A stretch of DNA of 53,891 nucleotides from Hyphochytrium catenoides (Eukaryota; Protista; Hyphochytriomycota), in NCBI GenBank assembly GCA_900088475.1, contig FLMG01001958.1, forward strand, positions 1 through 53,891. The letters are read 5' to 3'. The translations under genes and the position numbers were made by a program. Below the pieces are notes generated by a model. The model saw only the letters and a program-made list of their open reading frames with translations. It was not told where the DNA came from and made no database searches. How positions within the stretch are numbered: position 1 is the first letter of the stretch; every line of letters begins with the position of its first letter. Below are positions 8,190-50,060 of this stretch, one piece after another.

Positions 8190-10794
8190 ATGTCATTGCT
8201 AGCTGCCAATCCGTTGCCCTTTGCAGAGCCTTTTGGCCAAGCGAGGAGGGATATGGATTTCCATGACACAGCCTTTGGCAACGCTCAGAAGAATCTTCGA
8301 GACCTAGGTAAGATTAATTGTTCAAAGTCTATCAGTATCTGGAAACTTATCGCGTCAAAGCTAACGCCATATTTGGGAATGCTTAGGCGAAGGACGTGAT
8401 CCTCCGTTATCACTGGCCTCCTATGCTTGCAAACAAGCCTTCGTGCCTCTCCATCGCATGAAGCACGAGCTCGTTAGTGAAAAGAGCTCCATTCGTGGTG
8501 GCTTGACTCGGGTTGCAGCTGCAGTAAAAGCTGTGGGCCAGGCATCTGGCTCCTTCATGACTTTTGTCGGTGAGAAGACCTCTGACCTTGGCCGCAAGAG
8601 TCTTACCTCTGAGCTGGGACGCAAGAGCCTCAAGCAAAAGGATTTGGACGCCGTCAAGGCCGCTAGTGTTCCGGCCCCCTTGGCTCCGTCTACTTCGCCC
8701 TCAGTGATCCCCGCTCCTCTATCGGCTATAACGACACCAACCCCAACTACCTCTATCCCTTCAACCACGCCAATTTCGGTGATCTCTACTCCTGCCCAGC
8801 TTCACGCTTCTAGACCCACTGTTGCCTCATCGGAAACGGAGGAGACGAAACCAGCTATCACTCAGGCAGACGAGCCAGTTAAAGTCACTCTTGTGGGTCC
8901 CAACACTGTCGACATGCACCAGCCTTTTGAAATCCATGCAGTGACCACAAAAAGCTCGATGAACCTGTCCGACGAGACTCTCAAGGGCGCCTCTTCCATG
9001 GGCGAGACCGTGCTAGGCTCGCTCACGGATACACTGAAGGTTGCGCCACAGGGCCAACTCAATTTTATCGTCTCTCTGCGTGGAGGCTTGAATGAGACCA
9101 CGGGGAAATCTAACCTCATTCTTCAGAGCCAGAAATGGTCTTGGGATTCGAGCAAGCCGATGAAGACTACTTCCTTCAAGTTCACCGCCCCCACACAGGC
9201 AGGCATCTACCGTGGTTGTCTCACTATTCTATACAAGGGCAATCAAGACAGTGAAGCTAAGGTAGCAGCAAACATGTACTTCCTGATGAAGGTGAAGAAG
9301 CCTAAGCGAAAGCACTGGTGGAACACGGTTTTCGACCGCTTCATTAACTCTACTACCGGTATCAATGTCGCTCATCCTGTCTTCCAGCGCAAGATCTCCT
9401 CTGTGACAAAGCTTGTAGCATCTATCACACCGTCCTCGTGGCTTCGCTCTGGCTCGGACCTCTCTGACAAGTACCGCATGCATGTTTTGGAGACTCTGTT
9501 GACCAAGTTGAAGAATGGCTCTAAAAACGAAATCCTTATTGCTGCCGTCGCTATCGCTGACCTGGCTCAGCATGACAATGTACGGTCTACCCTGGTTGAG
9601 TATGGCATGGTTGATCCCCTGGCGCGTCTCGTATATTTTGGTGAAGAAAGCACAAGAGCACAGGCGCGAGCAGCATTGGCAAACCTTGCATTTGGCAATC
9701 ACGCTTACACAGAGACGGTTCTTCTGGCAATGCGGCGAGCATTTCTCCTTGCTTCCTATCATTTTCTCGTCGGTCAGATGGCCAGCGGGTCTACCTCTGC
9801 CAACCAGGTGAGCGCCACCAACGCCGTGGCCCATCAGATGGGTACAGGTTACCGCTCCAATAACGCTGGAGACGGGCCAGAGAAGACTCGTGATGGCAAG
9901 TGGTGGTTTCCTCGTTTCAAGAGCAACTGGTTCGGAGACTTCAGATCCAAGAATCTCTACCGCTGCTGCGAGTGTGCTCTAAAGGGCGAGAGGCTCCAAC
10001 GGTGCAATCGCGCTGTCGGGAAGCATTGTGTGTGCGGGCAAGATCAATGGATTCAGGCCCGTGATGAAGAGGCCAGGGAGATGAAAATGAGACAAGAAGT
10101 CAGTCAGAGGTATGGAGGCATCCGTTATGAAGAGGCTATCGCTCTTGCGAAAGCAGAAAGTGAGCACGCCTTAAAGCGCAAATGGACAGAGCTCTCTCAT
10201 CATCTTTCAGCGGATGAGCCCTTGATGAAGAGACTCCATACTGTCGACTCTCCCACGGCAATCTCTGCAGTGGCCGATCTTCAAAACCTCTCGTCACTCA
10301 TTCAGCTTAGCAACTTGCGCGGGGCTCTGCTAGAGCAGCAGCTGCTTGGCGGGTTCAAGGTTGCTCAGATGCTACCACCATCAGCAGCATCTCTATTGAA
10401 CACACCTCTGGCTTTCCACTGCGATTCTCTGGGGACAGATGGTCTCGCGAACTCGAATGGCGAAAAGGTGATGCACGAGTCTCTTATATTGGAGTCTTCA
10501 TTGGATGACCTGCCGCTGAACCTTGAAGGGATTCCTCTCTTCGAGGACATTACTGATCTGGACCTGGACCACTTCGTATTCGCGGAGGACTTTGCACCTC
10601 TGTCAGATCAAGCAAAGACTGAAAATCACACGTTGGCTGGAGCTACTCTCTTTTTGGAAGAGCCCAGCGGGGAAGTGGATATCTTTGCGGTGAAGGAGGA
10701 CACCATCAAGGTCGACTCAGAACCTCAGCATCAAATCGAGCCCGTCCCTCTCAGCCTGCCAGATACATCTGCGCTATCAACTCAAACCGCTTAA
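8190..10794 (+). CDS. ~841 aa protein with Ig-like beta domain, ARM repeats, Cys-rich motif and acidic C-terminus
   Basis: Exons 8190-8307 (G|GTAAGA, phase 1) and 8387-10794 (CTAAC branch, CTTAG acceptor) join in frame with the 783-codon ORF. ARM-like segment: EYGMVDPLARLVYFGEESTRAQARAALANLA. Also FKFTAPTQAGIYRG and CCEC..C..HCVC. Alternative start at 8253. Confidence 0.85.
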
Positions 10795-10959: not shown

Positions 10960-13610
10960 ATGTAAATGCATGTCAATACATTGGTTATCCATATAAGCAT
11001 GGTTCTTGGTGAAAGCTGGCCTATTATTGGTTGCAGCTCCTACGTAATGGACCCAAGGCAACGGGTCAAGACGTCTGCTTCTTGGCAAGGGTGTTCGTAG
11101 AAACCTCATGTACAAGCTTCTTACAGCGCATGTGTGAGCTCTGGGAGGACCCTGCATCGAGCGCTCATAAAGCGGCGATTGATGCTTACATTGACTGAAA
11201 GGAAGATAGAAGTCAAAATGAGAGAAGCAATACTGAAGGCTCAAGTTCGTTCCTTCTCCTGCCCCACCATCGGCAGAGAGACGACATCACCTCCTTATTT
11301 TCCTGCAATGCTGAAGAGACGAAACTTCCACGCATATTTCCTATAGAACTACTGTGAGGACTGAGGATTCACACACTCAGGCCAGCTCTCAGGCCCATTC
11401 TTATCCCATAACATGGACCAGCTGGAGCGGCTAACGGCCTTAAGTAGGGTCACCGGTACAGTCGCTGCACACTCGCAGACCCGTTCGCTTATTCGCGCAA
11501 CAAGGCAATCGCGGAAGTAGGAGACGCTGTGAGCGAAGTCAAAACCCGTGGAGAACGCCTCTTTCCCACTGTGTTACTCTTATACAAGAGGCCCGAGAGG
11601 GCAGGCTTTGCCGAGCACTGATCAGCAAGGAGCGTCGATCTCTTCTTCTTTCAACCGTGCAACTCAGAGGGAGAAACAGGGAACTCTTTTGTGGATGATT
11701 AACCATCATCAGGCAGAGGTGCTCATGCCCTGTCACTGTGGTTGAGGAAAACCACCTCTCGTGAGAGTATGACGGTCAATGCTGACTCTTCTCAGTTCGT
11801 GATGCTGCCGTGGATGCTAGCTCTCTACTCTGGGATGTCTTCTCTTATGGACGCCCTCAACTATCATATTCTCACCTTCCTGGAACTCCCACGTCGGCTG
11901 TCTGTCTTTCCTTTCACTGAGTCAGCCAGTGGCTTTAAGATACTGCTGCAGTCACTTACAGAAGACCAGCGGGCAGCACTAGAGCCGCTCTACCAGACCG
12001 TTGGCGGTCCGTTTGCACTCTCGATGTTCGATTTGAGCATCATCCCTCTAGACTCTATGGGATGTTGGAACCTAAGCTTCGTTGTCTTAGTGCTGCTCCT
12101 TTGCTGCCATGCAGAGCATCTCGCCTTTCTATAGGCGGCCGCTTTTCGGACTGGGCTCGTCCTATCTACTGCTTCTTCCTTGGCTTCTGACAGTATTTGG
12201 ACTTGTTGCTTATTTGGGGCGGAGCCTGGCTGTTAGCTATTGGGACTAATCTTTACTTTGAGGAGAGGACTGCGCCAGGGGAATGAAGACATGTTCACAC
12301 TGGCACCTGCTGTGAAGAAGGAAGGGCGACGACTGCACTTAAAGCAAAGGGCTGTCACAAGCTGATGCTGGATATGAACACGGACGGTGTAATGAAGATT
12401 TTCTTCAGCCGTGGCGCAGTCCTGGACGAGTCTTAGCCCGGGGCAGAAAGCTTTTGTCTGCTGGATAAAGGGAAAAGTATCTATGGCTCGGGTGAGAACA
12501 GAGAACAGCGAAAGGGCCAATACATAGATGATTTTCAGGAGGCTGGAGCTACTCTGGCTCTCGATGGAGGCAAGAGTTTGCCTGAACTCCCTTTGCTCTC
12601 CATAGGCACAGCTGCAATGGCTAGGATTCTCCTATAGACGAGGACAGGCACAGGAGTGATGCGATATCATTCTTGCTTTTGTTACATTGGCATTCAGGTT
12701 AACCCGTCAGAGCTCGACGGTAATAGGAACAGGATGTCGTTCCGCTGTCATACATAATGTATTGAGTGGCAGAAAGATCTCTGCTAGTACACCTCTCCAG
12801 GCCAGTCGCGCCAATGATAAGAACAGATGAGACCTCCCTGCTGGCTTGTGCCCAAGGACTATGCATCAACCCCTATCCAAAGACAACCGCTTCAAAATGA
12901 ATGTCACCGTTGTTAAGGACCAGCTCCGTTCCGCCTTATCTCTAGCAGTCAGCACGTGTTGGCGCAAGTCTCATGATCGTCCAGGCCGCGGTCAGCAGTC
13001 TGCCAACACGATCTTAAGACTCATCACAGAAAAGAAGCAAGAACACGAGGGAGCTCAGAACTATCCCTCAGGACTGCGATTACTACTCATACCTGTTCTT
13101 AGGGTCAGCGATAAGCTATAGCGTTATTTGGGATCTGGCGTGTTGGAATGTTGGAACCATGGGATCAGGTTCATCATGGGTTCACAGGAAACTATTATTC
13201 TGAATATAGGAATATCGGTTATTTTCGGACATGGGCACTGTTGTGTCCATCTTCATCCTCATCTCTGCTGCTGCTTGGACTGACAAGAACTGCTGCTGCT
13301 CCAATATCGCCATCCGCCTGAACGCCATCATCCCTGCCCCGCCTTCTGCATCCCTATCGCCGTCTGCTGTGCGTCAGCTTTCTCCAGGTTGCGGAGGATC
13401 TCGCTGACGTTGTTGAGAAAGAAGGCCATCTCTAGTAGGAAGACTCTTGGAAAGTCACACCCAGGAAATGTGTGTCCAGTGCGCAGCTTGAAGTAAGATC
13501 CTTGTGGCTCACTGAGTGATTGGGCGTAACAGAGAAGGCTGCACCTGACTTCAATATCTACTGGGCGGAAGGGAACAGCTCCTCCTACCAGTGCTATTCC
13601 ATCCAATGAC
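10960..13610 (-). mobile_element. Decayed non-LTR retrotransposon (CRE/R2-like RT) relic
   Basis: Disrupted minus-strand motifs in the expected order: IAL..FRPVDI (~13555-13595), MAFRRMAIL (NAF-like, ~13300-13330), PEG/VLSSLVF (QG motif-like, ~13040-13075), GLDD (~12980), LRLVQDC..LHYTVR (~12380-12440), MRFLRTPLP..DP..VHY..TKNH (C-terminal knuckle/RH-like, ~10995-11110). Confidence 0.4.
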
Positions 13611-13858
13611 TGTGCCTGCGAAGTAGTCCTTCTGCCTCTGCACCTTCATCAGTCTGTGGAGGTGTACCTCCACACACCACCCAGGGTTTGAATGGAAACG
13701 TATCTTGATGCTTTCTAAAACTAAGGTAGAGGAGGAGCGCAGTTGGAGCCATTCAGTTCACACTATATAAGATGTCTTAAGCAGAAATATCCTGCACTTA
13801 CACTGTCGAAGCGGATCCAGGTCCGATCTCAAGACCGTTAAGTCTGTCATCCTACTCC

Positions 13859-16800
13859 ATGGAGAAAGCTGAGGCTGCTGCGGCAGGCCTTACACCTTCT
13901 GAGAGTGGGACCCAATTGGCTACAAGCTCCTACTGGCAGGACACCCTGAAGATTCAGATTCCGCCAGCTGGGAGTGAGGGCCCATTCTCTCGTGAGTCTA
14001 CTCCGCGGGCTGAGAAGAACGGACTCATACAGATAGTCTTTGAGCAGGTTTGCCCTTCTTTTTGCCCTGGCTTAACCCTTACATTAGTGTGGCAGAGAGG
14101 CGGATGGTGTTCTGCAGTCGATAGTCCTCTGCCTGGTACTCTGCACAGAGGCAATCCTCTCTCTTAACACCTTTCCTTTCAACTCGCTTTGTTTCCAGGA
14201 GGAAGGTTATGTGACGAACATCTTCCGTGTACGGTATACAACAACCCTGGCAGAGATTCGTGAGCTGGTGGCCAAAAAGCGGCAGCTGACAGCTGAAGGG
14301 GTGAAGGCCTATGGTGTCACCATGACCCTTGCCGACGAGAAAGGTGCGTCTAACACTTTTCACCGGGTGTCGTCTAGGTGCATTTCTTGCCATTCTGTAA
14401 TGATTCTTCGGTTCTTCTTTTCTTCTCTACCTCTCTTTGCCTTTCAATATCGTCTCCCACGACCTGCATCCTAAGTTTGGTTGGCTAAGCGCCATGAAAT
14501 CCTAAGTATCTGTAACGTTGAGTCTCAGCACCCTCATTATCTATAATTTACTTACCGTCATATGTAGGCGTTCATAGAAAAATCCGGGACATTAATGATG
14601 ATGAGATGCTTTTGCAGCTGGCGGAGGAGTACCGTCAGCAGTATCCCAACGAGATTTCTAGCCTTTCATCGCCAAGTGCCCGGACCAGTCCAGCATCTCG
14701 AGGAGGAACAGGGAAGTTCACCCAGGAGGACCTAAAGGCCGTGAAAAGTGGACGTGGAAGACAGGGAAAGTACCGGATAAAGTTCCTCTTCAGAGTACGT
14801 ATTGGGTTTGTGACTTAACCTACCCTGCTGTTTACCTACACTGTCCCAATATTGCCCTTAGCTCTTCATTGGCTCCTCACGCTTTCTATTCATGTGCTGG
14901 TATTCAGTGCACTACGTTATTCTTACCTCTGTGTTCTGCCCTCACGTTTAAGTCTTTATTTCTTTTTCGCACTGTAGCGGCCTATGAAGTCCGCTGGTGT
15001 TTCTCAGAATAGCGGGACAAATGCCTCCTCGGGGACTGACCCGGCAGACTACTTCTCTCTGGTCCAGCAGTTGGGCTCCGTAAGTGACACTCAAAAGGGC
15101 TCCTTGGTATTTACACTTACACTAAACAACTCTCCAGGGTGAGCGCTCAGGCTATCTTTACAAAATAAGCAAGAAGAAAAAGGGTGTTGTTCGTAAACGA
15201 TGGTTCGTCCTGAAGGTAGGCAACCAATGGGTAGAGTGTAAAACGACGCTACGTTTGGCCTGTTAAGGCGGGAGAGGGCTGATGTGATGAGAGAAGCGCG
15301 TCAGAACCCAGGACATGCAAGCAGTGGAATCTGTTGCGACGTGTTCTTGGTGCTAACAACTCTCGTAAGGATGACTGCTTATGGTATTGCCCATCTCACG
15401 AGGACCAGAAGATAATAAAGTGCATTCCGCTGGTTTCCAGTGAGATCATTGACGCGGAGGTGGGCTGCATTGAATGCTGTCTTATTGGCTCTTGGATACT
15501 TACTGCTTACGTTTTGAACCCTTCAGCATGTCTACCAGTACTGCTTTGAGGTCAACACACCTCAAAGAGTATACCAGGTAAGGGGTAGCACTTGTAAGAG
15601 AACCTTCCTCCTGTTTTCTCTTATTGAGACGTTCTTGCTCACTCCCCTTTATTTAACGTCACTCCTCGCCTAAGAGCACCCTCTGCTCCTTCCCAGTTTC
15701 AGTTGGAAAGCTCCGCGAAGTCTTCATCGTTACGCATCTGGGCTCGAGAAGAGGCTAACGTACTTCACTCCATCTCTCAGCTATTGGCAGGCAGTAAGGC
15801 GGATATGCTTGCTTGGATGAGTGCGCTCAACCGCCAAGTGGAGGTAGCGTCCAAGAATGATCTCATTGCTATTGCGGACCACATAATCTGCGACGAGGTA
15901 TCGAGAGCATTTGGCTGAAAGGGTTGGGAAGGGATAGCTCGAGTCTATTCCGGCGGATGTTTCCGTTCGGCTTCTTTACGCTCTCCCTCGTACAGGAGCA
16001 ATCAGCCACGAGAAGGGAGGAGAATTTTATCAGAAGCTTGATGAGGTCGTTTACAAACAATCTCTCTTTGAAGGTGAGGAAGGTCAATGGAGAACACTGT
16101 GTATTCTGGTGAAACCTGACTTGATCTGTGATGCAATGGCTTGGATGGTGTCCTAGCCGATGTATGATGTCGTCTCCCAGTATCTAAAGCACGAGGAGAA
16201 GCTGCACTGGCTGCAAGCCTATCAAGAGTTACAAAGCACACTCGCAGGGATAGACTCTAAGGCCATCTTGTGGCAGGAGGTCAGTCACTGGCGTCTCTAG
16301 CTTGGCCGGGCTTTACGGCTTCCATCCCCGATCTCGTCTTTGTCTCGTTTGACCTCACCTTCCTGGGATTCCCTTACCATCTTGCTTGGTTATGCTGTCT
16401 GACAGTCATAATCTCTTGCCAGGCTCAGAGCCACGTCCAACGCATATATCAGAGCTACTTTCAGGTAAGAAAAGCTCAATCTCGACTCTCGGTTACGACA
16501 AACAGCATCATTCTGTCTTAAGCTCACTCATCTTCATTTCAGGATCCTGGTTCAGCCATATACATTGATGCTCCAAACCTCGCACACCTCAGAGAGAGAC
16601 TAGCAGACGTATCAGCTTTATCCAGTCCCCCTTCAATGGTAAAGCCACATACTCTCCCATCGGGAATCCAAAGATTGAGTCTGACCCACGCTTCAAAGAT
16701 CGGCAGCAGCGAGAGGGGCGATGTAAGAGCGATCCTCAAGCTTCTGGAAGCAACACGTGTGGAGATAGCGCGAAGCATTGATGAGGTGAACATACGTATC

Positions 16801-17058
16801 TCACTATCCTTTGGCTTCACCACCTTACCTCTGAGTTCCTCAGGGGCCATTCAAACGACTCAAGCAGAGAAGACAATATGCCAGATCATTGGCGATAATG
16901 GTGCATTCAGTTAATCTCCAGCAATTCGTGGGGCATTCCATGTCTAACTCTTGAAATCTGATTTCGTCTCACAGGTGCTGCAGCTGCGCAAACGGGATAG
17001 ATTGAAGCGGCAACGCAGCTCGCTGCGCTCACAGAAAGGCAGCCCTAGGCTATCATAG
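13859..17058 (+). CDS. RA (ubiquitin-like) - PH - RGS-like domain protein, ~513 aa, 15 exons
   Basis: Exons 13859-14047, 14199-14343, 14568-14794, 14978-15079, 15138-15215, 15370-15459, 15527-15577, 15781-15897, 15996-16073, 16181-16279, 16423-16464, 16543-16638, 16699-16785, 16844-16900, 16975-17058. All GT-AG and phase-consistent (1542 nt). RA: IRDINDDEMLL..KFLFR. PH: SGYLYK..RKRWFVLK..FEVNTPQRVYQL..MLAWMSAL. RGS-like: YLKHEEKLHW..RIYQSYF..IYID..GPFKRL. Confidence 0.85.
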
Positions 17059-19357
17059 TGCTCATGGCCAAGAGTGTAAACCTCTATTAAATCTCTGGTA
17101 TAACGCCATCAGAGATACATCCTCTCTCTCCTTTCCAAAGCTCCATTGCCCTTACTATTTGAAGTAGTTGGGTCCATCAGTGCCTAGTCGTCTTTTCTGA
17201 CCAGTTAGCGCTAGGAGCCCATGTGTATAAATACCTATCACTGTTCACCCAAACTTTGACATTGAACCATAGCCTCAAGGCAGGCGGGATGGTCTCGCAC
17301 CCCGCATCCAGAGGTAGCTTCGAGCTCTTCATGCCTCATAACCTCTTTGAGATTATAACACATTCCGTCGTTCACAGCGGTTCTGGCGACAGGAAAGTGA
17401 TCACCTAGAAGCTCGACAAATAAAAGCTATTTTGAGGCTTAGGAGTAACAGACAGTTCCCAGACTTCACACATTATTGGACAGGTTATACCTACTTGTAG
17501 AACTTCCAGGCAATAATCTTCCAGGGTCTTCAGCCATGATGCTGTTGTCACTTCGAACAAAAAGATTGACCAGGAATGCAACGGTGGCACTGGCGGCAGC
17601 CCCATCGCAATGCAGAGAAAGTAGGGGCAGATAAACTACAGCATTATTTTTCTCAGCGATGGTACTATATCAAGCTCCTGACCTTGGAAAGTACACTGCG
17701 GTATAGCTTATAGGCTGATATGACTGTCACTGACCCTGTCACGTCTGTACGTATGGCTCCGAATATGAGACAAAGTGAGGGTTTAAGGGGGGGAAGTGAT
17801 TGTAAGCTGGGCCCGCAGAGGCCCTTCACGACGGAGGGATGACCGTTTGCACCGAAGCAGAGTACCTGATTGAGAAATGGAAACAGCTAAATGGGACTGA
17901 TTATCATGACGCTTACCAACCCAGACAATTGTGGAAAACATAACAGCGAGCAACAGAATAGCACTTTAATCAATGTTATGGGTCTTGGTCAATCTTCTCA
18001 AGCCTACATGCGGTGCATTATGTAGATTCAATAAAACGGGAAAGGAACAGCTTCCACCGACAGCAGCCAAGAATGACATCAGCATGGACGATGCCCTGCA
18101 CCTTGAGCGCTCCCCCTGACGCAAGGTAGGTCATTGGTAACCCTTCCTTCTAGTCTGAGGCCACTCTTGCGCATCACCTGGACCTCAGTAAGTGCGATGC
18201 AATAGCATCGTCATCGTCGTCTGCCCAGTTATCTATAGAAGGGCGATTTATCACCAGACACCTGTTGGTGCTGTCTGGGGTTCTATCTCTCTTTTGCTCT
18301 ATGAAAGTCTATGAAGGATCTTCTAACAATCTTCATCATGGCCATCATCGCCATCATCCATCAGATCAGGCCAGCTCCTTCCTCCTTCCTTCAATGTACA
18401 ATTACGCCATTTTTGACAATTATTGACAAACGCCATTGTTCAGTTTATTTCACAAAATGCGTAAGAATAGGTTAGTAAATTCACAGCACTCGAGCCAAGA
18501 AGATGAGGGGCCTCTGCCAAAATTGACTTTATGTCAACAGTGACGATGAGGACAGGGTGCTCGCATTTGTAATACAGTTTCCAACCCACACCAGCCTTCT
18601 TGGCAAGGAATTATTTGGGGCAGGAAAGCTATGCTGGGTTTTCTTGTGTTCTGGTTATAATTGTTAGGCCTCCCTCCGACCTATCAACGTGTGTTTGTCT
18701 GGTTGTGTGGCGTGTCCAGGGTTGGAGGGTTGGGGAAATTTGGGGTCCATTTGCTTGTAACAATAAGAAACCTAACCGACAAACATAATTGTACTAACCA
18801 GGAGACAGACTAATAAGAGATAGGCTTCCATCAAGACAGAGAGCCAGGATACGTATTTTACCTATGCTAATCCGGAAACCGAGATGGGTGTTAGAGAGGA
18901 AGAGTCAGTGAAAGAGGCATGTTGGAGGCAGCAGGGTGGACGGGGTCAGCAGGGCAGGTGCCACCATAATAACAGCCCCTAACAATGGCGGTGCAGGGAG
19001 AGAGAGACAGAGAGACAGAGAGCAAGAAAGATGGCGGTGATCAGTGAGTTAGAGGCATGTGAGCTTTTCTTCAATGCGAGCCAGAGCTATCGTCATTGAC
19101 CTCCTCGCGTCTCCAATTGAGAAACGCGATGATGAGGCTTCAGACGGGCAAATGAAGGCTCACAGACAGGCAGAGGAGCTTTATGGTGACGGCATCGACT
19201 GGCGGAAAGAGGTACTTTGGCAGAGAATAGGACTGAGTTGATGACTCGTCGGCCGTTCGTAGCCATCTGATACCGCTTCTCTGTTAGCGTAGGGGAGGAT
19301 GCATCGAGAAGACGAGCTAAACCATTGTAAGTTCTGGGACTGAAAGTCACGATAAGA

Positions 19358-22300
19358 ATGGAGCGGCACTGCGTCTGGGTGCCCGATAAGCGGGTAGCTT
19401 GGATTCAGGCTGAGGTGGTCTCAAGCATGGGGAGCTCTGTGGTGGTGGACATTGTCCAAGATGCTGAGGAGGTGATGAAGGGGAACTTTGAGCGGCCAGA
19501 AGAGTTAGAGCGGCGGACAGTTCTCGTCAATGCGGTTACCAAGTTGATTAGAACTCCAGGTAAAGTTCTCCCGTCGCTGACACTGCTTACGCTGCTTTAT
19601 GTTGACTAAATGGGCATCTGATTCTGGTGCTGACCTTCTCCATCGTCAATAGGGTCACCTGACGAAGCGAACTTTCTCCCCCTGGTGAATGGTACAATGG
19701 GTCATAGCGGTATTGAGGACATGAGAGATTTGACATACCTCCATGAACCAGCGCTGCTTGACAACCTACGGAGGCGTTTCTTCGCCGAACTCCCTTGTAA
19801 GAAATATTGTCAGAGAGCCGCACCTCTTTCTTTTGAAAGGTAGAACTTGCTCCCATCTCACCCCTTGGTTCTCTACGACCAGACACTTATGCCGGGGACG
19901 TGCTGATTAGCGTCAACCCATACAACTGGCTCGATATCTATGACGAATCGTACCAGAAGAAGTATATGGACGGGTATGACAATAAACCCCTCTCTCTTTC
20001 AGTTGTTGGAGACTACTGACAGGACTACTTTATAAGCGTTACGTCCGAGCATCGTTTTTCATTCCTTCGCTTCTAGCGGCATGACCAGAGAGCTGTAAAG
20101 CTCTTTACTCGTGTTGGCATCTCTCTCTTTCCTCTCTGCTGATTGACGTTGTCTAACTCTAGAAATAGGTCGGAGGAGCTGGCCCCACATCCTTATGCCA
20201 TCTCGGCTAGGGCGTACATGAATGCTATCGATAAGTGCAAAAACCAGACGATTCTTGTCAGTGGAGACTCGGGTGCAGGGAAGACGGAAATGGTCAAAAT
20301 GCTCATGGAACACCTGGCGTTTCTTTCTTCCTGCTCTGGAACTGCCCCTGCTGACGTCATGCACAGCAATGACACAGTCATAAGGGTGTTAGAGTCAAAC
20401 CCTCTCCTGGAGACCTTCGGCAACGCACTAACAACGCAGAATGATAACAGCAGCAGGTTTAGCAAATTTGTTCAGATGCAGTTTGACGCTTCCGGCCGCT
20501 TGCTGGGCTCCGTGACCTCAGTTTATCTTCTGGAGAAGAGTCGCGTGGTGCACCTGGATGGAGGAAACAAGAACTTTCATATCTTTTATCAAATCCTTAG
20601 TTTGCCAGTAGAGCAAAGGAAGCGCTACTATTTGGAACTTCGATTGGAGGACTATCAATACGTGGTGCCCCCAAAGGGGGCTATGGCAAAAGATCCCGAA
20701 CTCGCAGTGGAACCGACGTGCTTCGAAGACACGGTGAATGAACTCGAAGTAGTAGGCATCTCTGAGGAGGAACGGAGGCAGATCTTTGAATTGATCGCTG
20801 GCATTCTAAACACTGGTAACTTGGAGATCATTACCTCGCGGGAGAACTCCGAAGGGTCCGACATTGCAAGCAGAGATCAGCTTGCCATAGTGGCAACGCT
20901 GTTTGGCGTAACACCCGCGGAGCTAGCTTCCGTTCTCTGCACTCGTTCAATCACAGCCCGGGACGAAGAGTACTCGGTTCTACTACGTAGAGAACAGGCT
21001 ATTGACTGCCGAGATGGCCTAGCCAAGGCGGTGTACGAGCGGCTCTTTCTCTGGTTGGTAGATAGAATTAATCGGTCAACCGGAGGCTATTCTGCCTTTC
21101 TAGAAATTGGTCTTCTGGATATCTTTGGCTTCGAGTGTTTCGCACACAACTCTTTTGAGCAGCTGAACATCAACTACACGAATGAAAAGCTGCAGCAGAT
21201 TTTCATCGCCAACGTGGTAGAAAGCGTGCAAGAAGAGTATCTTGCAGAGGGGTTTCACTGGGCACCTCTGTCACCGCCGGATAATAGGGACGTTCTAGAG
21301 CTACTGGATGGAAAGCTCGGCATCTTCTCGATGCTCAACGAAGAATGTGTGCTGCCCCAGGGCAGCGACCAGTCATTTCTCAGCAAGCTCGTCAGCCGGC
21401 ATGGGAGCCATCCACGGCTCGTCCGACCGCCACCTAAGCAGGCCGGAAGCGTCTTCATTATCAAGCATTACGCAGGGGAAATTAAGTACACCGTAGGTGG
21501 CTTTTTAGAGAAGAACAAGGACACCCTAAACTCGACTGTCGTCTCTCTTCTTTCCAAGAGCAAATCGCCGGTTCTACGAAGCCTCTTCCGCCAATTTGAC
21601 TTCACATTGACAAAGAGAGCGTCTCCGAGAGGAGCCGGAACACCGGGAAGCAGGGCCTCTCCAAACAATAGGAAGCGAAACCTGTCCATGATAACGACTC
21701 CCACAGTCGCCCAGCAGTTTCAGGTGCAGTTATCGGAGTTGGTGCAAGGCATCACGAGCAGTGATATGAGCTACGTTCGCTGTCTCAAGCCAAACAAGCT
21801 TAAGAGCTCTTCAATATTTGATGGACTGACGGTAGTTCAGCAGCTCAGACTCTCAGGTAAGCCCACTTGAGATTGTACCAGGTTACTGGACAAAAGAGGC
21901 ACACTCCAAACAAGTTCATGTCCACCCTCATTAATTATCCGACGTCTATCATTGGCTGTGGCTCGGATCCCTTCTGCTTATTGGAGATCAATACTTAATG
22001 CCTTTTCCTCTGACCTGCCTTCTTTACCGCTTTTTCCTCTGGACTAGGCATCATTGAGGCGATCTACATTAGTCGATCGAAATTCTCTTCTAGAATGACC
22101 TTTGAGGACTTCTATAACCGCTTCCGCATCCTTGGACATGGTAATGGAGACAGAACCTCTGCAACAGGTGAGAAAGTTGCTTGAGATAGGTGCTAGTCGG
22201 AGAAGTTTTGAGAAAGACCACTCGGTGAAGCAGCGAGTGAAATGTAATTCTGTTTAAGGCTTGATTGGCGCCATGAAAGGATTGATTTGACTGCATCAGA

Positions 22301-25300
22301 TGAAGCAAGATCGATTTACATGCAGTCCACAGGGACAGGATTTGAAGCCGAGAACGCCATTCTTCTGGCTCAAGCTGTGTTGCCAGGTGGCGTGACATCG
22401 GAAGAGCAAGAAAGGATTCACAGCGACAGTGAGGTTTTCTATGTCATCGGAAAGACCAAGATATTCTTTCGGACCCATGTACTGGAGGAGCTTGAGCACA
22501 GGAGGCATGAGGTTAGATACGCGTTCATTGCTGCATTACGGTTGTTTGGGCATGGTACTCGACTCATACAAGACAGTAATGCCAGCTCGAAGGCAGTCTT
22601 CAAGCCATGTTCAGAAGTCTCATTTTTGACTTGTAGAGCTTGTTCTGATTTATATCCCCTTAATTTTCTCTAAGATGTCAACGTTCTAAGCCTATATTCC
22701 ACCAGCTTGTGGACAGGAATTCCCGTAGAATCCAGGCTTTCGTTCGCCGAGTAAGCGCGCGGAAACAGTTTTTGCAGTTGAGAGAGATGGTTAGAGTCAC
22801 TCAGGTGATGTTCAAGCTACGCATGAAACGGAAGCAGCGCAGAGCTTTGAGCCATAGCGCGGCCCTGATTCAGGCTACATATAGGGCCTATTGGCATAGA
22901 AGACGGTATCTTAAGCTACGAAGAGCCGTTCTTTGCCTTCAGGCACGTTACCTTCTCCTCCTAAGACGCTGGAGTGAACACCATTCCCAGACAAGTGCCA
23001 TCCTCATACAGTCCATCGTTCGGATGTTCTTAGCCCAGCGGGCAGCCGCCCGCTTGCGCCAGCAAAGAGCGTTCAATGTTGCTCGCACAAGGCTGCTCAC
23101 GGTGAAGAAGAATCGTTCTTCCCGTGTCATACAAAGATCATTTCGACGATATAGCTCAAGAAGGGCGATGCTTCCTGCCCTCTCCGCACTGGTTTTTCGA
23201 AGAAGGCAGTTCTCAGCCACAAAAATCCAGTACTGGTGGCGTCGCTACCGACAAGACGGTTCAAGAGAAACTCGGACACCAACTAACGTTTACCAATCTC
23301 CCAACGCTGTTGATGTGAGTGGCTCCCCGGATCGCAGTTCCACGAACAGCTTCCATAGTGCCCTATCTGCGTCCCCAGCCAGGACTCTGGGCTCCCCTAA
23401 TGTTATGCCGAAGGCTTCGAAGAAAGAGCCAACGCCATGGCCGACCAGCGTTGAACCAGAGGAAGAGAGTCCAGGGGTTACCCTTCCATCTGACTGGAAG
23501 GCCCTTAACAATGGTTACATGAGGCCCGGTGTGATAAGGAGCAAGACACCTACGTCCTTTGGAAGGGGGCGTGGCAGGAATGTGAAGGAGATGGTGAAGA
23601 ACGCAAAAGTGTTTGCTGTCAAAGACGATCCCATGGATGAGTATTATGCTAAGGACGAAGGTGAGAAAACATTCCCCAGGGCTGATCGGCAATCTGGATT
23701 CTTGACGCCTATATTCTTGAGCCACTGCCTAACCTCCTCTTACATCAACCTCGTTATTTTTTGCGCGTATGACTGATGTGGCCTTCCTTCTCGCCTTGTC
23801 GGTTGAGTCCTTTGGACTCGGGTTTGGCTGCTTTCTTATCTCTCATGGGGTCTGCCTTTTAATCTGCCTTTTAACGATGTTAGTTTGCTTCTTATTGTAC
23901 TCTCTTTTCCTTACTGACGCGCTACCGTACAATATGCAGTTGAGACACAAGCCAGCAAGCGGGATCTTATTCAGCGCCATGAAAAGAAACTGAGCCAGCA
24001 AATGACTGGGCCTGCCTATCAGATCCACAGGATGTTGGCTCGGACACTAAAGGCCACGCTAACAGTTCAAGCCTTCTGGAGAGGATACTTAGTGCGAAGG
24101 GTATACAAGGCACGAAGGGCGGCCATTATCAGAATTCAGGTACGTAGAGTGGCAGTGTCGGGATCTTTTAGAGGGAAAGGAACGTTACGAAGAGAGGAAG
24201 AAAGCCTATCCTTGATGATTTCCCGCTAGCCACGAGTCAAAAGGTCGACTTTTTGGTTCCATAGGGTTTTTCTTAGTGGACTGTCTCGAGACTTATCATT
24301 TCCACTCCCCTGCTTATCTCCACCGTAGTCGTTCGTGAGAATGTATCAGGCAGTGCGACTGGTGGACAGGCTCAGACTGTTTATGGGCCAGCCTGCGAAG
24401 TACAAGAGTATGTCCAATGAAACCCTAAGCATTACAGTGATGTTTGCTCTTTGAACCCTAGTTGCATGGCCGTAGCTCAACTGAACTAGATGCTGTTCTA
24501 ACCTTTGATCTACCCTGGCTGCACCATCCTGCCCTGACTCAAATTGCGAACAGATTTTGCTCGTATCCGTCTCCCTAGCAATGGCAAGATTAAGGAAGCC
24601 AGGGATCGCACAGAGAGCGGACCTAGGACCTCAGGTGGGAAAAGAGATGGACCAAGAACTAGCGGACCGAGGGTTAGAACCGGTAAGAGCGCTTGCCTTT
24701 TCTGTCGGGCACCTCCCGTTATTGCGCCGTGCCTTGAGAGGATAGTTGTGGTGTTATCGCAGCAGCGTCTTGTACTAAAATCTGACTCTTTGGCGTTGTA
24801 CATGTTTATAGACCCTAAGCTTCATGCCTCCAATTCTATTTCCTACAGCGCAAGCTTCGGCCTACTCCTTCCCAGATGAAGCGAGAACTGCAACCAGAAC
24901 CACTAGCGGCAAGCTCTCTCTTTCTCCCACAGCCAGCGCCGCCCTCCTTTCAACTTTTGCTCGCAGCACTCGGGGAACAGCGGCAACATCTTCGACAAGC
25001 GCGCTTTCTCCCTCCTCACAACAGAATTCCTCCCCTTCTTACCCCGATGTCAACAACGTGACACCTCCATATCCTGAACCTCAGCCCGGTTATACTGAGA
25101 GAGAAACAGAGTTTGTCTTGACTGCGGATGGACCCGTCAACATGAAGTATCAGAACCAGTTGCAGAATGAGATTCAGGACCAGATGACTGAGAGGGAGAC
25201 AGAATTCGACCTTACCGCTTTCGGTCCTGTCAAGGTCGTCATCACTATTCAGTCTTCTTCTTTGAGCAGCTTTTGTAGCATTCAGTGCTCTGCGCCTAAT

Positions 25301-27736
25301 CTCCCATCTCCCCAAACTTCTCCGTAGCTTATGGTTCTCTCTCATAATTTATCCGTAGAAGGTTCTTCTCGATTGCACTCGCCCTTGTCTCGTGTACGCC
25401 TAACAGCAGCTTCCTTCGTTTCAGGTTGAAAAATCACCTCGAACTGCCGCCAGCCCGCGCACTCAGGCGAAAACCGACAATATGATTAGGGAGGTAGACA
25501 TTGACAGCCACGTGAGTAACTTTGTGGTCCTTGGAGGAAGTAGCAAGGGAGTCTATGAAGGTAAGGGTGTCGATTTGTTAGATCCATGATAAGAGACGAT
25601 AGCTGGTAAGTTCCTGATGTTCTAATTTTACAGATATGAAGATGGATCCGCTACTGGCGCGTGCAGCTTTAGATACTGCGGCGTATGCGGCGGCTAAAGG
25701 CGGTGAAGGTTCCTCAGGTGGAAAGAAGAGTAAAGGCTGGCCACATACGCCATCTGAGCACAGAGGTGAGATAGAAAGTGCTAAGTGAATGACTTAACTG
25801 TGCTGAACTTTTGTGTTTACCTCTGTCAGGGACAAAGCATATGCGCTCGTTTGGCAGTACCGAGAGTGCGGGAAGCTCCTCCGGGTCACCTCGAGTGACC
25901 GGCTATGGCAGAAGTGAGACTGCAAGGACAGATCTTCTAAGGATACATTTTGAACAGGTCAGCTCCTAGCCTGCTTCCTGGTTCTCATTTAATAGCTTTC
26001 CATATTGCGGCTATCCGTGAAGTTCTATCGTAATCCCGAGCTTTGTCAAGCTGGCGGCTGACCTACTTTTGCTCTTCCCATTGCAGGGCGCAGACACTGC
26101 CTCTACAGTCCTTCGGGTCTCTGACAAGATGGACACTGTAACTGTGAGAGACATGGTAGCTAGGAAGAAGGGACTGTCGGATGAGGAGGCGAGCTACTTC
26201 AGCATCGTGCTCCTGATTACTGATGAGAAAGGTGAGACGCAGGGACATTACTTACACCAACCTTCTGCTTCCTAATGTCGTGCGCTCACTATTCTCTGGT
26301 CTAATCTTACCCATGCCTTCTTCAACGCCGCCTCCATATTAGGATCAGCTTAGCCAATGTTTCTCTTTGTCGCTCAATGCATGTGCCATCTTCACCATAG
26401 ACCCATATCTGACGTATTGCACCTTCCTCACCTCTGATACCAGGCACGATTATCGCTGTGAGGACCCTTCAGGACGATGAGCGGCCCCTGGAAGTGGCAG
26501 AAGAATATACGGAAAGCGTTGATATTGATGGCGATTCTGAGAAGAGAAAGAGTTCCAGAAAGAGTGGGAAGCCAGCTAGGATGAGAGTCAAGTTTATTTA
26601 TAAGGTAGAAGCCTTCTCTTTCACTAGTTCTGAGGCGCAAGCTTTTCGTTCTAGAAAGCCTTTAAAATTATGAGACGCCGATTCTTATTGTTCTTCCCGT
26701 TACCCTGGTCTGGTCGTTGACACGTCGTTCTGACTTTGTGAATTGCTCTAGGATGCCCGATCGGCACCTATTGCAGTTGCGAATATGAAGATTAACAAGC
26801 TTGCCAAGTCTGACGAGCCGGACTACTTTAGCCTGACACAGAAGCTTGGCAAGGTCAAACCCTAGCTCCTTCCTCCAAGCAAGCTCTCATACGCACATTA
26901 TTTGGTTTCCTGTTCCTTTCCGATGGTGATGGAATCAGCTGCGTCCTTTGGGATTTCCTGGCTACTCAATAAGGAATCCGAGTACCTCACAGTCTCTTGC
27001 TCTAGGGTGATAAATGTGGTTATTTAAGTAAAGTTAGTCAGAAGGAAAGGAATGTCATGCGACGGCGGTGGTTTGTCCTTAAGGTACGCGATGCCCGCCG
27101 TTGAATGCACTGCTCCTTTGACCCTTGTGAAGCCCGTGCCTTTACCAGTGCCGCCTCAAGGATTATTGTGTTCACTCTCTCATCACTACCTCTGTTTCCA
27201 GGACGACAAGCTATGGTACTGCAAGAATCATGAGAATACGCGTGATCTGAAGTTCATTAACCTCGTCGCGACAGAAATTCGTGAGAGGAGCACCTCGGTA
27301 ATTCAGCTTCCCCGATAGCTCGGCCATAGTCGCCCGTCACTCAATGCTTCTTGGCTGTCTTCTATGCAGGGTATGGCCTACAGTTTCGAAATTATCACCA
27401 GCGAACGTGCCTTCAAGGTAACGATAGTGGCCAACTTTTTTGACCAGAGTGAAAGTCGGGGGTGGATGCCTCACCCAGTCGCACAGGTCCTAACCCACTT
27501 CCCCTCTCTTCTCATTGCTCGACTCTGCTGTCCCCGGTCTCCCCTTTTCGTCCTGCTCTTTCTGTTGGTTTGTTGTTTTGTTTCCCTCTGCGCAGCTTGT
27601 GGCCAGCAGCCGATCCGAGATGCACCAATGGATGGAGGCAATCAGGAAGGCGAAAATTTTTGCGGACGAGAATGACTCAATGATCAGGGCGGACAAAAGC
27701 ATCAGGAAGCAAGTCAGGAAATTCTTTAGGCCATAG
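19358..27736 (+). CDS. Unconventional myosin heavy chain (SH3-like N-terminus, motor, ~9 IQ, low-complexity tail, C-terminal RA-PH), ~1780-1790 aa, 21 exons
   Basis: Exons 19358-19559, 19653-19796, 19883-19973, 20163-21856, 22048-22167, 22300-22511, 22706-23660, 23940-24139, 24329-24407, 24554-24682, 24876 (or 24849)-25234, 25425-25560, 25634-25765, 25830-25957, 26087-26231, 26444-26604, 26752-26853, 27006-27083, 27202-27297, 27370-27417, 27596-27736 form one open frame. Motifs: VWVPD, LHEPALL, SVNPY, GDSGAGKTE, NDNSSRF, LDIFGFE, NEKLQQ, YVRCLKPN, GKTKIFFR. The myosin call is secure; the tail fusion is inferred from splice phases. Confidence 0.9.
25094..25231 (+). repeat. Two copies of the coding motif TERETEFxLTAxGPV, 93 nt apart, in the myosin tail
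   Basis: Copies at 25094-25138 and 25187-25231; 13/15 aa identical. Confidence 0.9.
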
Positions 27737-27911: not shown

Positions 27912-30900
27912 TTACTCCTCGTCTTCTTCTTCTCCCGACTCTTCGTCTGTTTGTTCGTATTCAAAGCTCTCATCTTCGTCGGTTTCCTCTTCATCTGGAT
28001 CCTTGCTCTCCTCCTCATCTTCGTCTCCGCCAGAATCCTCATCACTGCACTCACCAACCACCAGTCCTGGGCGGTCGAATGCAAGATGCGTCCCATACCT
28101 GGACCGAATGTACCTGTTGCACACGAAAAGCGGGGTTCCTATGAGCAGAGAACAAGTGGTGAAAGTGTTCAACTTTGCAATTGACTGCAGGTCTAAGTGA
28201 GAGCGAAGAGGTAGACGTGTAAGAATAAATAGAGATGTCCGTCGAAAGCAAAGGCACGAAGTGTAAAGCACCCAAGAGAGCCAAGACAGAGGGCAGAACA
28301 AGGGTAACAACGAACCCAGGAAGTAGTAGGAGGAGGGCGTACTCTATGTAATCCATCCCATCTACTCCATCCCAAGGGCGTCTATACCGCTTGAGATAAG
28401 CCGTCTCTCGGTGTTTGTGGAGAATCTGTAATCACAAGCACCACGCAGAGGCTCAGTCGGGCTTACATTAGCAGTAGGAGTAGTAGAGTCGAGGTGAATG
28501 ACGGGAAGAGACGGGTAAGCGTGGTTGACTTTGTCACGGCTCGAACGGAAGAAACATTTCATCCAGCTATAACAAACCAGCTGTTGGGAAGCCTGTATGG
28601 ATTTCAGTGAAGAACTAATAGACCTTTTCTTTAACAGCTTCTTCAGTGATCTCGCTGTACTTATCTACGATCATCTGCTTCCATTCCCGTTCACTCCAGT
28701 AGCTTTTTTGGAGACATTCGAGGTACGAGAGACGGGACAGAGCACATGCAGCTTTCATCTACACGGAGAGGACCCAGCCATAATGGGAACAGATTGGTGA
28801 GCAACAGGAATGTACATACGGCAGAGAGTCAAAGATCATAGGCATGGAGGTATTAGACTAAATTGATGCAGTAGAAGTATGCAGCGGTAGAGGTAGAATT
28901 GTTCCAGACAAGGGACGTAGCGGGACCACCCAGAGTAGTCAGAACCTGCTTTCCCTCATCTCACCTCTTCCATCTCACTCGGCATCACTCCGGGAGAGTC
29001 CAGCAGATCTCTCAATTTTTTCTTGTCCACTTCCATCTGCGATAGATAGGGTGATGGTAAGGAATGGCCCAGTGACCAACCCCACAGAATAGGTATAAAG
29101 AGAGATGAAGATTCCACAACACAGGGCCGATGTCGTGAGGCACAGTTTAGCGACCCTAGTAAGCACAAGAGCAGGGATGCTCCCTATCTATAATAACTAC
29201 TGACGGGCTCAGAAGGAGGTAGATGCAGAGTAGGAAGCAGGACATACCGCGTTTTGTAGCTGTGGAAGCTCAAGTTTGTGCTCCTCTTTTAACTCCAGAA
29301 CCTCCGACGTCAAGAGGGCCAGCCCTTCCATGGAAAGAGATGAACAGTATTGGAACTTTGAACACGGATCAATACTGGAGATGTCTTGTATACCTTCTTC
29401 TGTTTGAGCAAAGTAGCGCTGCGTCTCTCTCTTCGCTTCCTTCACTGCTTTCTCTGTTTCCTGCTGCTCGTCGAGGTACCGCGAGTGTTCATCGTCCCAG
29501 CAGATGACCTGATGCATCAACGGAGAGAGCGTGCCCAAAAAAGAGTGTTACAGAGTTGGCTATATGAGAACAACAAACCCAAGCATAAGCCCTAGGCAAA
29601 CAAGGGAGAGCATGAGGTCGTCCCGGAGAGCATGTGAGCGACAAGGGATGGCCCTACGACAGGCACCTTCTGCAAAACCCATGCGTTTTTTAATCTGGTG
29701 CGCATAAAGAGAATGCGGTCCTTGGAGGTTCCGACGGTCCGTCGCTCCCAGGGCCCAAGGTACCTATCAAGAGCATCCTCAACTTGCCGCCTAGTGAGAG
29801 GATCAAAGGGTACGACTAAGAAGGCGCCAAGGACTAGTACCAGCACTGTGAGGCCATAAGCTATCTGGCCACGTTGTTTAAAGCGTTAAATCAGGTTTCC
29901 CGAGACATAGAGGAAGACTTCCCACTTCAAATGGAGCTTGTTCGAGTGGTAGGTGAGCTATTACCTATGCGCTGTCTCTCACCTTGTGTACGGAAACTGG
30001 ACCCGTGTTCGTCCTCTAAAGATTCTCTCTCTCAAGTGCTCCAATAGAGGTTTCCTTCCTTTCGGGCGCGGCCCCCACAATGCGCTAGGCAAAATCCCAT
30101 AACAGGAGCACATTTGCCCGCCTACAAGCGAAAAAAGTTGGAAAGACGAGGGGTCGAGCCGCCATAACACAATATTAACCATACATCCTAGGCTATCATT
30201 TCCAATGGAGAGGCAAGAGACAGTGGTGCAAGAAGGTCCTCTCAATAGAAACAATTTCCCCATACCTGGGCCCCATGGCCTTTGCACATCGTCATTTAGC
30301 TCTGCCTCAGTAATCCATCTTGAGTATCGCGCGAGCTTGATGAGATCGTACAGACTCTGTAGAACACGCCTGCGGTATTCCTGAGCGCACCGAATGCGAT
30401 CTTCCAAGAAACTATTTATGATGTCTATGCCCCTGGAGATAAATGAAGTCGAAGGAGCACACGGTTAGGTGCGAATAACAGCAGTAAAGCCACTAACATG
30501 AAGAACTGAACTGGGACTGAAGGCCAGCAGTATCTCTTGATTAACAGCATTCGTGCTCCAGTCTCAGAAGCGTGAGGGGCCCTCCTTGAGCAGTCATATC
30601 GGCTTTCAAGCTAAGTGTCTCCCTTCTCACCCATACAACGGCTGCCTGTACCCAGTGGCAGACGACATTTCCAATCTACCCACATTTTCTCCACAATGGG
30701 TCATGTTCCTCTTGCGGAAGCCTGTCTTTGACTCGGCCCGGCTATATCCTTACCTCTGATGATGGTAAAAGAAGTACCCATTTATATATCGGTCGACGGC
30801 ATTATCGAAGGCTACAAGAGTCTCTTTGTCCTGAACAAAAAAGTTGTCTCCACCCTCGAACTCTTCCACCACCAGTAGGTCCTTTGTGGTAGGGGACAGT

Positions 30901-48600: not shown

Positions 48601-48876
48601 GCCAGACGACCAACACGGCCCGTACACGCCTTCAGGCGTCAGGTACTCACTCTCAGGAGTCTGAACTGGCTGGTACGTGATGGGAATACCGAAAGCTGAG
48701 TGGTTTGTCAAAATAGTAAAGACCTCCTTGTTCACCAGCCATCTTTTCTTGGCCGCAGCGAGTAAAAGCGGCGCCTTGCTGAGGACCGAACCCACATCAA
48801 TTTGAGGGAGCTTGCTGCAGCATGGCGCTTCTTCTAAGTCTGCCATCCCGGATACGCCATGTTCGGGTGTGAACAT
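42691..48876 (-). CDS. CAMTA: Calmodulin-binding transcription activator (CG-1, TIG/IPT, ankyrin, IQ)
   Basis: CG-1: KRWLVNKEVFTIL..YDRHKVKRFRNDGHNWQKK..VREHHMKLKV..YAH..FHRRVYRL..LVLVHY (48160-48800). TIG: IIEYAPSWDYEEGGAKILV (~47200). Ankyrin: GFSLLHYACFYNY..SPLHMAAGSGHLDIV (45300-45870). IQ motifs: IQHNVRAWL, LQATTR, VQAATRSMLAR, FQAATRGVLER, IQRNI. Last exon 42928-42691. Start at 48876 or 48846. Confidence 0.92.
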
Positions 48877-50060
48877 GGAGTAGAACACGTTGTCCTTCCG
48901 CCAATTATGGGACCCCGCTAGCGGCCGTCCTCACCAGCTGGTGGCTGCGATCACTGACAGAGGCACCCGATCAGCCACATCCGTTTAGGTTCACCACCGA
49001 GCCTTTACTTCCTTTTGGATAAGCCGTTACGGACGAGGAGGAGTATCTAGAGCTCTCGTCACGCAAGGCAAAAACGAACAATCCCACCGGACAGCACCAT
49101 TAAAGGGCTCCACTTCCGTTCTTATCCCAGACTAACCCATACGCCATACGACCACCAGCATACGAAATGACCTGCTCTCATGGGCGTGCGTTAGTGAGGT
49201 TCTATGCCCAACCCTTCCTTTTCAGAGCTTTGCTCGCACCAGAATGAGCTTGAGGAGCTGTCTGCAAAAAGGCCTGGTCAATGCAGCTGCAGCATCAGAT
49301 AGGAACTTTTCCAATGACAGAGCGGTGACAACAACAAGCGTGTCCCCTCTTCGTCTGATGATGGCGGGTAATTTTACCGGAACTGCTTGTCAATAATCCA
49401 ACATAATGACATTCTGGGGCTAATGCTACTCAAGCGGAATACAATATTACTGATAATATCAGTTAGTAACCCAGTCATCAGGAATAGAGCCTCTTGTGTA
49501 CAGTTTTTGACACACTATTATTGCCTTCTTGTAAAACTTAATGTCGATCCCACTCCTGAGAGCTCCCCCTGGGGTGATGGCTGTTCTTTCACACCGCCTC
49601 GAAGTTGATGAAGAGAAGTTCTCAATGAGCTGGAAAGGTCAACAAGCTTTGAAACTTCCTCTCGAGACATGGTCACCTCTTACGCTGCACTCGAGGGAGG
49701 AGCTATACATCATACTTCGCTTTACTCAGCAGTGCAAGCCTCATCGCTGAAGAACAGTGATCGGTGCTAGGGGTGATGGACCTGGAGGTGTAGCCCTCGC
49801 GAGCTCGGTGGGCACCATCCAGTGTAAACCTTGCCGAGCAGGAAGTGCCCTGAGGCTGCACTCCTTTGCCCTCGAGGAGGACTAAAGCACCGTCCTTCAA
49901 GGCAGTGCAATACGTAAGCTATCAGATATGCCAAACGGGGGCCGCTGATGGATGGGTGCGCTGTTTGAACAGCTGCATTTGGAGCTTATCGTTCAGCCTC
50001 GTGACCCTCGGTCAGGTGTCGTTGTTCTGTTACTCTCGTAGGCGACGTAATTTGACCTAA

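Follow-up and report, generated by a model that had tools for sequence, protein, structure and literature searches.

Contig FLMG01001958.1 of Hyphochytrium catenoides (NCBI GenBank assembly GCA_900088475.1), analysed over its full length of 53,891 nucleotides (nt) and referred to below as the window, is intron-rich eukaryotic DNA with a G+C content of about 49%. Two neighbouring genes on its plus strand are the subject of this report. Gene A, at 13859–17058, has 13 exons and a predicted product of 522 amino acids; gene B, at 19358–27736, is predicted to encode a myosin of 1783 amino acids in 21 exons. The tail of this myosin and the N-terminal half of the gene A product turned out to be related, and the question is how a motor protein could have come by such a tail.

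The exons of both genes were placed by hand on the sequence, using GT-AG borders, and were then checked with a script. Every one of the resulting 32 introns is of the GT-AG type, with lengths between 58 and 279 nt, and the in-frame codon log-odds are above zero for every exon of gene A. The features of the two genes are as follows.

13859..17058, plus strand: gene A, an open chain of GT-AG exons for an RA-like region, then a PH domain, then an RGS-like C-terminal half
14020..14794, plus strand: RA-like region of gene A (end of exon 1 and exons 2–3), aligning with the tail of gene B
15138..15897, plus strand: PH domain of gene A (exons 5–8), recognised by local phmmer and by a motif regular expression
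15996..17058, plus strand: C-terminal half of gene A, labelled RGS-like by the first-pass annotation, unconfirmed and with a motif-level resemblance only
17059..19357, no strand: spacer of 2.3 kilobases (kb) between gene A and the myosin
19358..22511, plus strand: N-terminal SH3-like domain and motor of gene B (exons 1–6; Pfam Myosin_N and Myosin_head)
22706..24407, plus strand: neck of gene B (exons 7–9), where five or more IQ-type motifs form two clusters
24554..25829, plus strand: low-complexity linker of gene B (exons 10–13 with their introns), connecting the myosin to the RA-PH tail
25830..26604, plus strand: RA-like region of gene B (exons 14–16), with homology to gene A from about 25900–25930
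27006..27712, plus strand: PH domain of gene B (exons 18–21), up to the point that matches the intron-8 donor of gene A
27713..27736, plus strand: 3′ end of gene B, a GT (gtcagg) followed by 7 codons and TAG, a candidate relic of a truncated copy

In the spacer, no open reading frame with a convincing coding signal was detected, the codon log-odds being negative in every frame. Exon 12 of gene A (16543–16785) contains a possible extra intron of 60 nt (16639–16698, gtaaag ... tcaaag), the removal of which would drop 20 residues of the RGS-like region.

The first-pass annotation, made from the letters alone, had proposed that 14020–15897 in gene A and 25930–27712 in gene B encode collinear paralogous peptides. 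Our analysis agrees with it in both positions and peptides. When the spliced proteins were compared by blastp, residues 43–330 of gene A and the last 270 residues of gene B shared 95 of 289 positions (33%), with an E-value of 2e-53. A MAFFT alignment carrying intron marks showed that all seven introns of this region coincide in place and phase (0,1,0,0,0,0,0), with a one-residue offset for one of them, which adjoins a 2-codon indel, just as had been noticed before. The spliced modules comprise about residues 55–333 of A and about residues 1520–1776 of B. The corresponding exons, all on the plus strand, pair up as follows.

14199–14343 (A) and 26087–26231 (B): 145 and 145 nt, with a phase-1 donor in both
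14568–14794 (A) and 26444–26604 (B): 227 and 161 nt
14978–15079 (A) and 26752–26853 (B): 102 and 102 nt
15138–15215 (A) and 27006–27083 (B): 78 and 78 nt
15370–15459 (A) and 27202–27297 (B): 90 and 96 nt
15527–15577 (A) and 27370–27417 (B): 51 and 48 nt
15781–15897 (A) and 27596–27712 (B): 117 and 117 nt, up to a GT in both

The equal lengths of 145, 102 and 78 nt had already been listed, and the 117-nt pair adds a fourth. Seven exact coincidences of intron place and phase within about 290 aligned residues cannot be chance. The shared introns (7/7) and the four equal exon lengths show a copy made at the DNA level and not by retroposition. The modules are thus genuine paralogues that arose by copying of DNA together with its introns.

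Similarity is spread unevenly along the module. Only 11 of 48 residues (23%) are identical in the RA exon and 15 of 26 (58%) in the first PH exon, which reproduces the earlier counts; the PH exons are in general much better conserved between the copies than the RA exon. Over 264 aligned codons, 36% of amino acids are identical, synonymous differences make up a proportion (pS) of 0.81, which is saturated, and the nonsynonymous divergence (dN) is 0.68. By sequence divergence the duplication is old, as had been claimed, since its synonymous sites are saturated. A match at the DNA level survives in a dot search only in the first PH exon (64% over 90 nt). Alignment of the 5′ flanks of the two modules yielded only short common words, which were not significant, and a search for further RA-PH copies elsewhere in the window found none.

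The two modules lie 12 kb apart on one strand, and the genes that carry them are separated by 2.3 kb (17058 to 19358), in line with the first description of the locus. Paralogues this close on a single strand are very unlikely to be chance neighbours. Taken together with the common introns, adjacency and common strand favour a local duplication at the DNA level, which is the best reading of the relationship.

Regarding the identity of the shared module, the PH part is confirmed by sequence comparison in both copies. In local phmmer searches the spliced protein of gene A matched the myosin-X PH region of protein P0041 (residues 1233–1336; domain E-value 1e-9) and that of gene B matched myosin-X PH regions with an E-value of 1e-8. 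Pfam in turn calls the matched regions of these myosin-X-type proteins (P0041, P0055 and P0139) PH, with 1e-34 for the region of P0041. Additionally, a regular expression found the basic motif of the beta1-beta2 loop, K-x-S-x7-R-x-R-W-F, to be kept in both copies. In PH domains, such a basic K...R-x-R motif goes with binding of 3-phosphoinositides.

Directly N-terminal to the PH domain lies the RA-like region. Searched exon by exon, exon 15 of gene B gave a Pfam RA match below threshold (E-value 0.052; 14.6 bits against a cutoff of 21). Along with this weak match, the paralogy of the two copies and a pattern of strands and helices that fits the ubiquitin-type RA fold lend the RA label weak support. 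Thus, of the RA-PH designation given at first pass, the PH half is secured by phmmer, Pfam and motif, and the RA half leans on that single sub-threshold match. As for the C-terminal half of gene A, it resembles RGS domains at the level of motifs only.

The remainder of gene B is unmistakably a myosin. Pfam recognised Myosin_N at the N-terminus (3e-7), which is SH3-like, Myosin_head on the 1.7-kb exon at 20164–21856 (E-value 3e-161) and IQ in the neck (2e-10), where a regular expression placed IQ motifs at residues 821, 867, 913, 954 and 1173. The nucleotide-binding motifs are intact, with a P-loop of GDSGAGKT, a switch I of NDNSSRF(S)K and a switch II of DIFGFE; in switch I, an S stands in place of the G found in most myosins.

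A search of 1.84 billion cluster representatives with the motor exon gave 22,266 proteins at E-values up to 0.001, and all 11 matches that were scanned with Pfam were myosins. The closest motors among these representatives are 44–45% identical to gene B, and the top matches are protist sequences, including oomycetes and Diphylleia. In the nearest motors, the tail has a PX or a WW domain or no domain at all. A scan of metagenomes for relatives of the motor returned none above 45% identity. In sequence, the motor of gene B resembles the heterokont-type myosin XXI group.

It is likely that the myosin and the RA-PH tail form a single transcript. The frame is open from the neck through exons 10–14 with GT-AG introns, and the whole 21-exon frame is continuous; the predicted junctions between linker and tail exons are 25234/25425, 25560/25634 and 25765/25830. 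Splice sites were scored with a leave-one-out model and ranked among all GT or AG sites. Both the donors and the acceptors of introns 12 and 13 fall in the top 1–4%. For intron 11, the acceptor is in the top 2% and the donor is moderate, with a score of 3.9 (top 12.5%). Codon log-odds mark exon 12 as clearly coding in its predicted frame and leave exons 10 and 13 ambiguous; the 90 nt that follow the exon 11 donor, which unspliced translation would include, look non-coding.

Further evidence came from a closely related strain. A contig from a soil metagenome (2024 run X4) represents, at high depth, a strain about 99% identical to the window and covers 23667–27237. All seven differences from the exons of gene B are synonymous changes at third positions. 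Linker exon 12 has two of them, including 25478, and the RA-PH exons have three, including 26224 and 26487 in the RA-like region. The predicted introns of gene B hold 24 differences and all 8 indels. The contrast between exons and introns has a Fisher p of 0.006, and we estimate that an all-synonymous set of exonic differences would arise by chance roughly 1 time in 10,000. Synonymous-only exons together with intronic indels therefore support the exon model, and the strain comparison demonstrates purifying selection on the tail of gene B. It had been claimed earlier that both frames were kept open: both chains are indeed open, and selection has been measured for the tail of B. Another run, X5, which is labelled as a different organism, shares 6% of the words and is a possible usable relative.

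How the tail may have been acquired can be outlined in a few steps. An ancestral RA-like and PH segment would have been duplicated as genomic DNA, introns included, so that its copies now sit in neighbouring genes on one strand. A local block duplication would first have set a second A-like copy just downstream of an ancestral myosin, so that A, myosin and A′ stood in a row; this arrangement would likewise result if A and the myosin had been tandemly duplicated as one block and the distal parts had then been lost. The copy would then have lost everything beyond its eighth exon, with translation running 7 codons into the counterpart of gene A's intron 8. Finally, it would have been spliced to the myosin via three short low-complexity linker exons.

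The 3′ end of gene B bears on the truncation. The shared 117-nt exon of gene A is bounded on its 3′ side by the donor of intron 8, GAG/gtatcg (the slash marks the splice border), and gene B has a GT (gtcagg) at the identical position. Beyond this GT, the frame of gene B runs 7 codons to a TAG, and intron 8 of gene A, if retained, would add 6 codons and a stop. Because of the GT at the donor position and this run-on, truncation inside intron 8 fits gene B. A search downstream of gene B for an RGS-like remnant found none, and a convergent gene starts about 150–200 nt away. Additionally, the in-frame ATG at 25840 in exon 14 of gene B comes only 10 nt after the acceptor, as would fit the capture of a former first exon.

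The GT with its run-on, the gene order and the ATG of exon 14 favour a direction from an A-like gene to gene B, and none of them is decisive; we hold this direction to be somewhat more probable than its opposite. The best overall explanation is that of a local duplication whose A-like copy was truncated and then joined to the myosin, to which we assign a probability of about 0.55. The idea that a local duplication had fused RA-PH to a myosin was already present in the first-pass annotation. Its paralogy, introns, linkage and common strand stand, and the fusion and the role of A as donor are plausible in view of the retained GT and the gene order.

Several observations weigh against this explanation. 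The retained GT could be a chance match, with odds of 1 in 16, and a search for an outgroup or relative that would root the duplication gave a best motor of 44–45% identity and no similar tail in 150 proteins and 80 loci. No RNA contigs of the locus came from three soil metatranscriptomes, and a search of sequencing runs turned up DNA runs and soil metatranscriptomes only, with no RNA run containing it. Any of three in-frame ATGs (25482, 25636 and 25840) could be the start of a separate short RA-PH gene, and a putative divergent gene some 200 nt ahead of the gene A ATG hints that promoters may be short.

The domain labels add to this list. Other exons of A and B, searched singly, gave no Pfam RA match, and a profile built from the two RA exons found nothing in PDB, nor did it match the RA-like domain of myosin X in hhalign. 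The RGS label given to gene A at first pass could not be upheld: exons 10 and 12 had no Pfam match at E-values up to 1, and the exon-wise search produced no PDB match at E-values up to 10 and no Atlas lead, in a domain whose split over at least four exons weakens such searches.

The alternative that survives best reverses the direction. Myosin-RA-PH would be the older gene, and a copy of its tail would have landed upstream and been spliced to an RGS-type gene through a chance GT 7 codons before the tail stop. It is not unusual for a GT to stand at a given position, and nothing in the window roots the duplication. More steps are needed, however, to arrive at the observed order of RA-PH-RGS upstream and myosin-RA-PH downstream, as the copied tail must gain a new promoter and a start codon. 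The ATG just inside the acceptor of exon 14 is what would be expected of a captured first exon, and no myosin with such a tail occurs among the nearest motors. For these reasons we regard the reverse direction as unlikely.

It is less probable again that no fusion took place, in which case the sequence from about 25.4 to 27.7 kb would be an independent, truncated tandem paralogue of A beginning at one of the three in-frame ATGs, and the myosin would end near 25325 with no globular tail. Such an arrangement is compatible with two parts unlinked by RNA, with the moderate donor of intron 11, with the ambiguous codon bias of exons 10 and 13 and with short promoters, should these exist in the genome. 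It does not account for the strong acceptor at 25424, which calls for an upstream donor, nor for the non-coding character of the 90 nt after exon 11. In exon 12, the in-frame coding signal begins before the first ATG, and the synonymous difference at 25478 precedes that ATG as well. The first candidate ATG would follow the myosin stop at a distance of only 157 nt, and the frame is open across three consecutive well-scoring introns.

That A and B owe their modules to two separate, unlinked genes of a bigger RA-PH family is very improbable: intron places can be family-wide in intron-rich protists, but a second member would fall within 12 kb on the same strand in only about 2 of 10,000 cases per member (an estimate for a genome of roughly 60 Mb), and the two modules, 33–36% identical over their full length and with four exons of equal size, look closely related.

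Returning to the truncated and captured A-like copy, what the tail might do can be outlined from its parts. The tails of myosins decide where the motor goes. The tail of gene B would bring the motor to, or switch it on at, patches of membrane that hold active Ras/Rap-type GTPase, sensed by the RA-like part, and 3-phosphoinositides, sensed by the PH domain; that it binds such ligands we infer from the analysis of its domains. Gene A would carry its C-terminal domain to similar membrane sites. With RA exons that are only 23% identical, it is doubtful that A and B still share one ligand, and a regulator-plus-motor pair with one common input, as suggested at first pass, is speculation. A still fuller proposal is tentative at best. 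According to it, the architecture is new, its tail is a coincidence detector for Ras/Rap-GTP and 3-phosphoinositides captured whole from a neighbouring G-protein regulator gene, and the linked pair still answers the same membrane signal.

Surveys show that myosin tails are swapped often, and the route is rarely visible. Here, donor and recipient would stand side by side, with introns in register and a possible relic of the breakpoint, so that the locus offers a concrete example of tail acquisition by a motor at the level of exons. If the tail does bind a small GTPase and phosphoinositides, this would be a motor outside animals that Ras/PI3K-type signals recruit directly. The example is an old one from a single lineage, and its transcript, direction and ligands are deduced; it thus illustrates tail acquisition well and does not amount to a new principle.

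Other frames in the window surround the two genes. On the minus strand at 13191–13640, open frames with coding bias and no Pfam match end about 200 nt upstream of the gene A ATG; they may belong to a divergent neighbour of gene A that shares a very short promoter region with it. Further upstream, at 8365–10791 (plus strand), an open frame of 809 codons begins with a low-complexity stretch rich in Pro, Ser and Thr and has one sub-threshold match to an Armadillo repeat; this frame probably represents the principal exon of the gene that precedes A. Convergent with the myosin is a strongly coding, very acidic (Asp/Glu-rich) exon at 27915–28118 (minus strand), with about 150–200 nt between the gene ends. 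Two more minus-strand features are a leucine-rich-repeat exon at 36022–36558 (Pfam LRR_4 2e-8, LRR_8 6e-8) and a CAMTA-like gene at 42949–48930, with a CG-1 DNA-binding domain exon (Pfam 8e-15, 48445–48930) and an IQ exon (6e-10, 42949–43386).

We also looked for comparable tails in other myosins. Among the 150 best motor proteins, local phmmer with both modules found no RA-PH-like tail, the only matches being to generic PH domains. The same was true of 80 myosin loci from metagenomes and metatranscriptomes searched by tblastn with both modules. In the literature we found neither a myosin with an RA-PH tail nor a protein of RA-PH-RGS architecture. Two large myosin classifications list RA only in class IX, where it is N-terminal, and in class XXII, and an RA-PH tail in no class.

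Among known families, the layout of the module is reminiscent of the RA-PH tandem of Grb7/10/14 and of the MRL proteins (RIAM, lamellipodin, MIG-10 and Pico), which serves for coincidence detection of Ras/Rap-GTP and phosphoinositides at membranes. A and B have the corresponding layout of an RA-like region with a putative ubiquitin fold, a short linker and a PH domain whose beta1-beta2 loop is basic. Unlike those adaptors, A and B are without SH2/BPS, proline-rich and coiled-coil parts, and the module forms the C-terminus of a myosin in one case and the N-terminus of an RGS-like protein in the other; the likeness is one of layout. If the C-terminus of gene A is an RGS domain, gene A would resemble RGS12 and RGS14 in joining a module that binds Ras-family proteins to a G-alpha off-switch. 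In RGS12 and RGS14, however, a pair of Raf-like RBDs follows the RGS domain together with a GoLoco motif, and the RGS identity of gene A is unconfirmed.

Within the myosins, class IX (N-terminal RA), class X (PH in the tail) and class XXII (RA between MyTH4 and FERM) likewise couple a motor to GTPase or lipid signals. They differ from gene B in the position and combination of these domains, they are holozoan or opisthokont classes and not its nearest motors, and only the PH domain is similar in sequence. A further counterpart is class XXI, which comprises heterokont and haptophyte myosins with variable tails (PMC3942036). The nearest motors of gene B, from oomycetes and other protists, with IQ motifs and PX, WW or no tail domain, follow the pattern of this class (PMC3942036), and gene B has in common with them the N-terminal SH3-like domain, the intact motor and the IQ neck. 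Motor identity is only 41–45%, and the putative placement in this class is by nearest matches.

With respect to mechanism, the proposed origin of gene B recalls Drosophila Sdic and chimeras of the jingwei type. In these, a duplicated neighbour was partly deleted and read through into the adjacent gene, and in Sdic a gene of a motor complex was joined. Those genes are young and keep recognisable DNA identity, whereas the pair described here is ancient, with saturated synonymous divergence and steps untraceable in non-coding DNA; what they have in common is a local duplication leading to a new composite protein. Thus, the arrangement of motor, IQ neck, linker, RA and PH is undescribed in the literature searched, in a group known for turnover of its tails and by a mechanism, duplication with fusion, that is classical.

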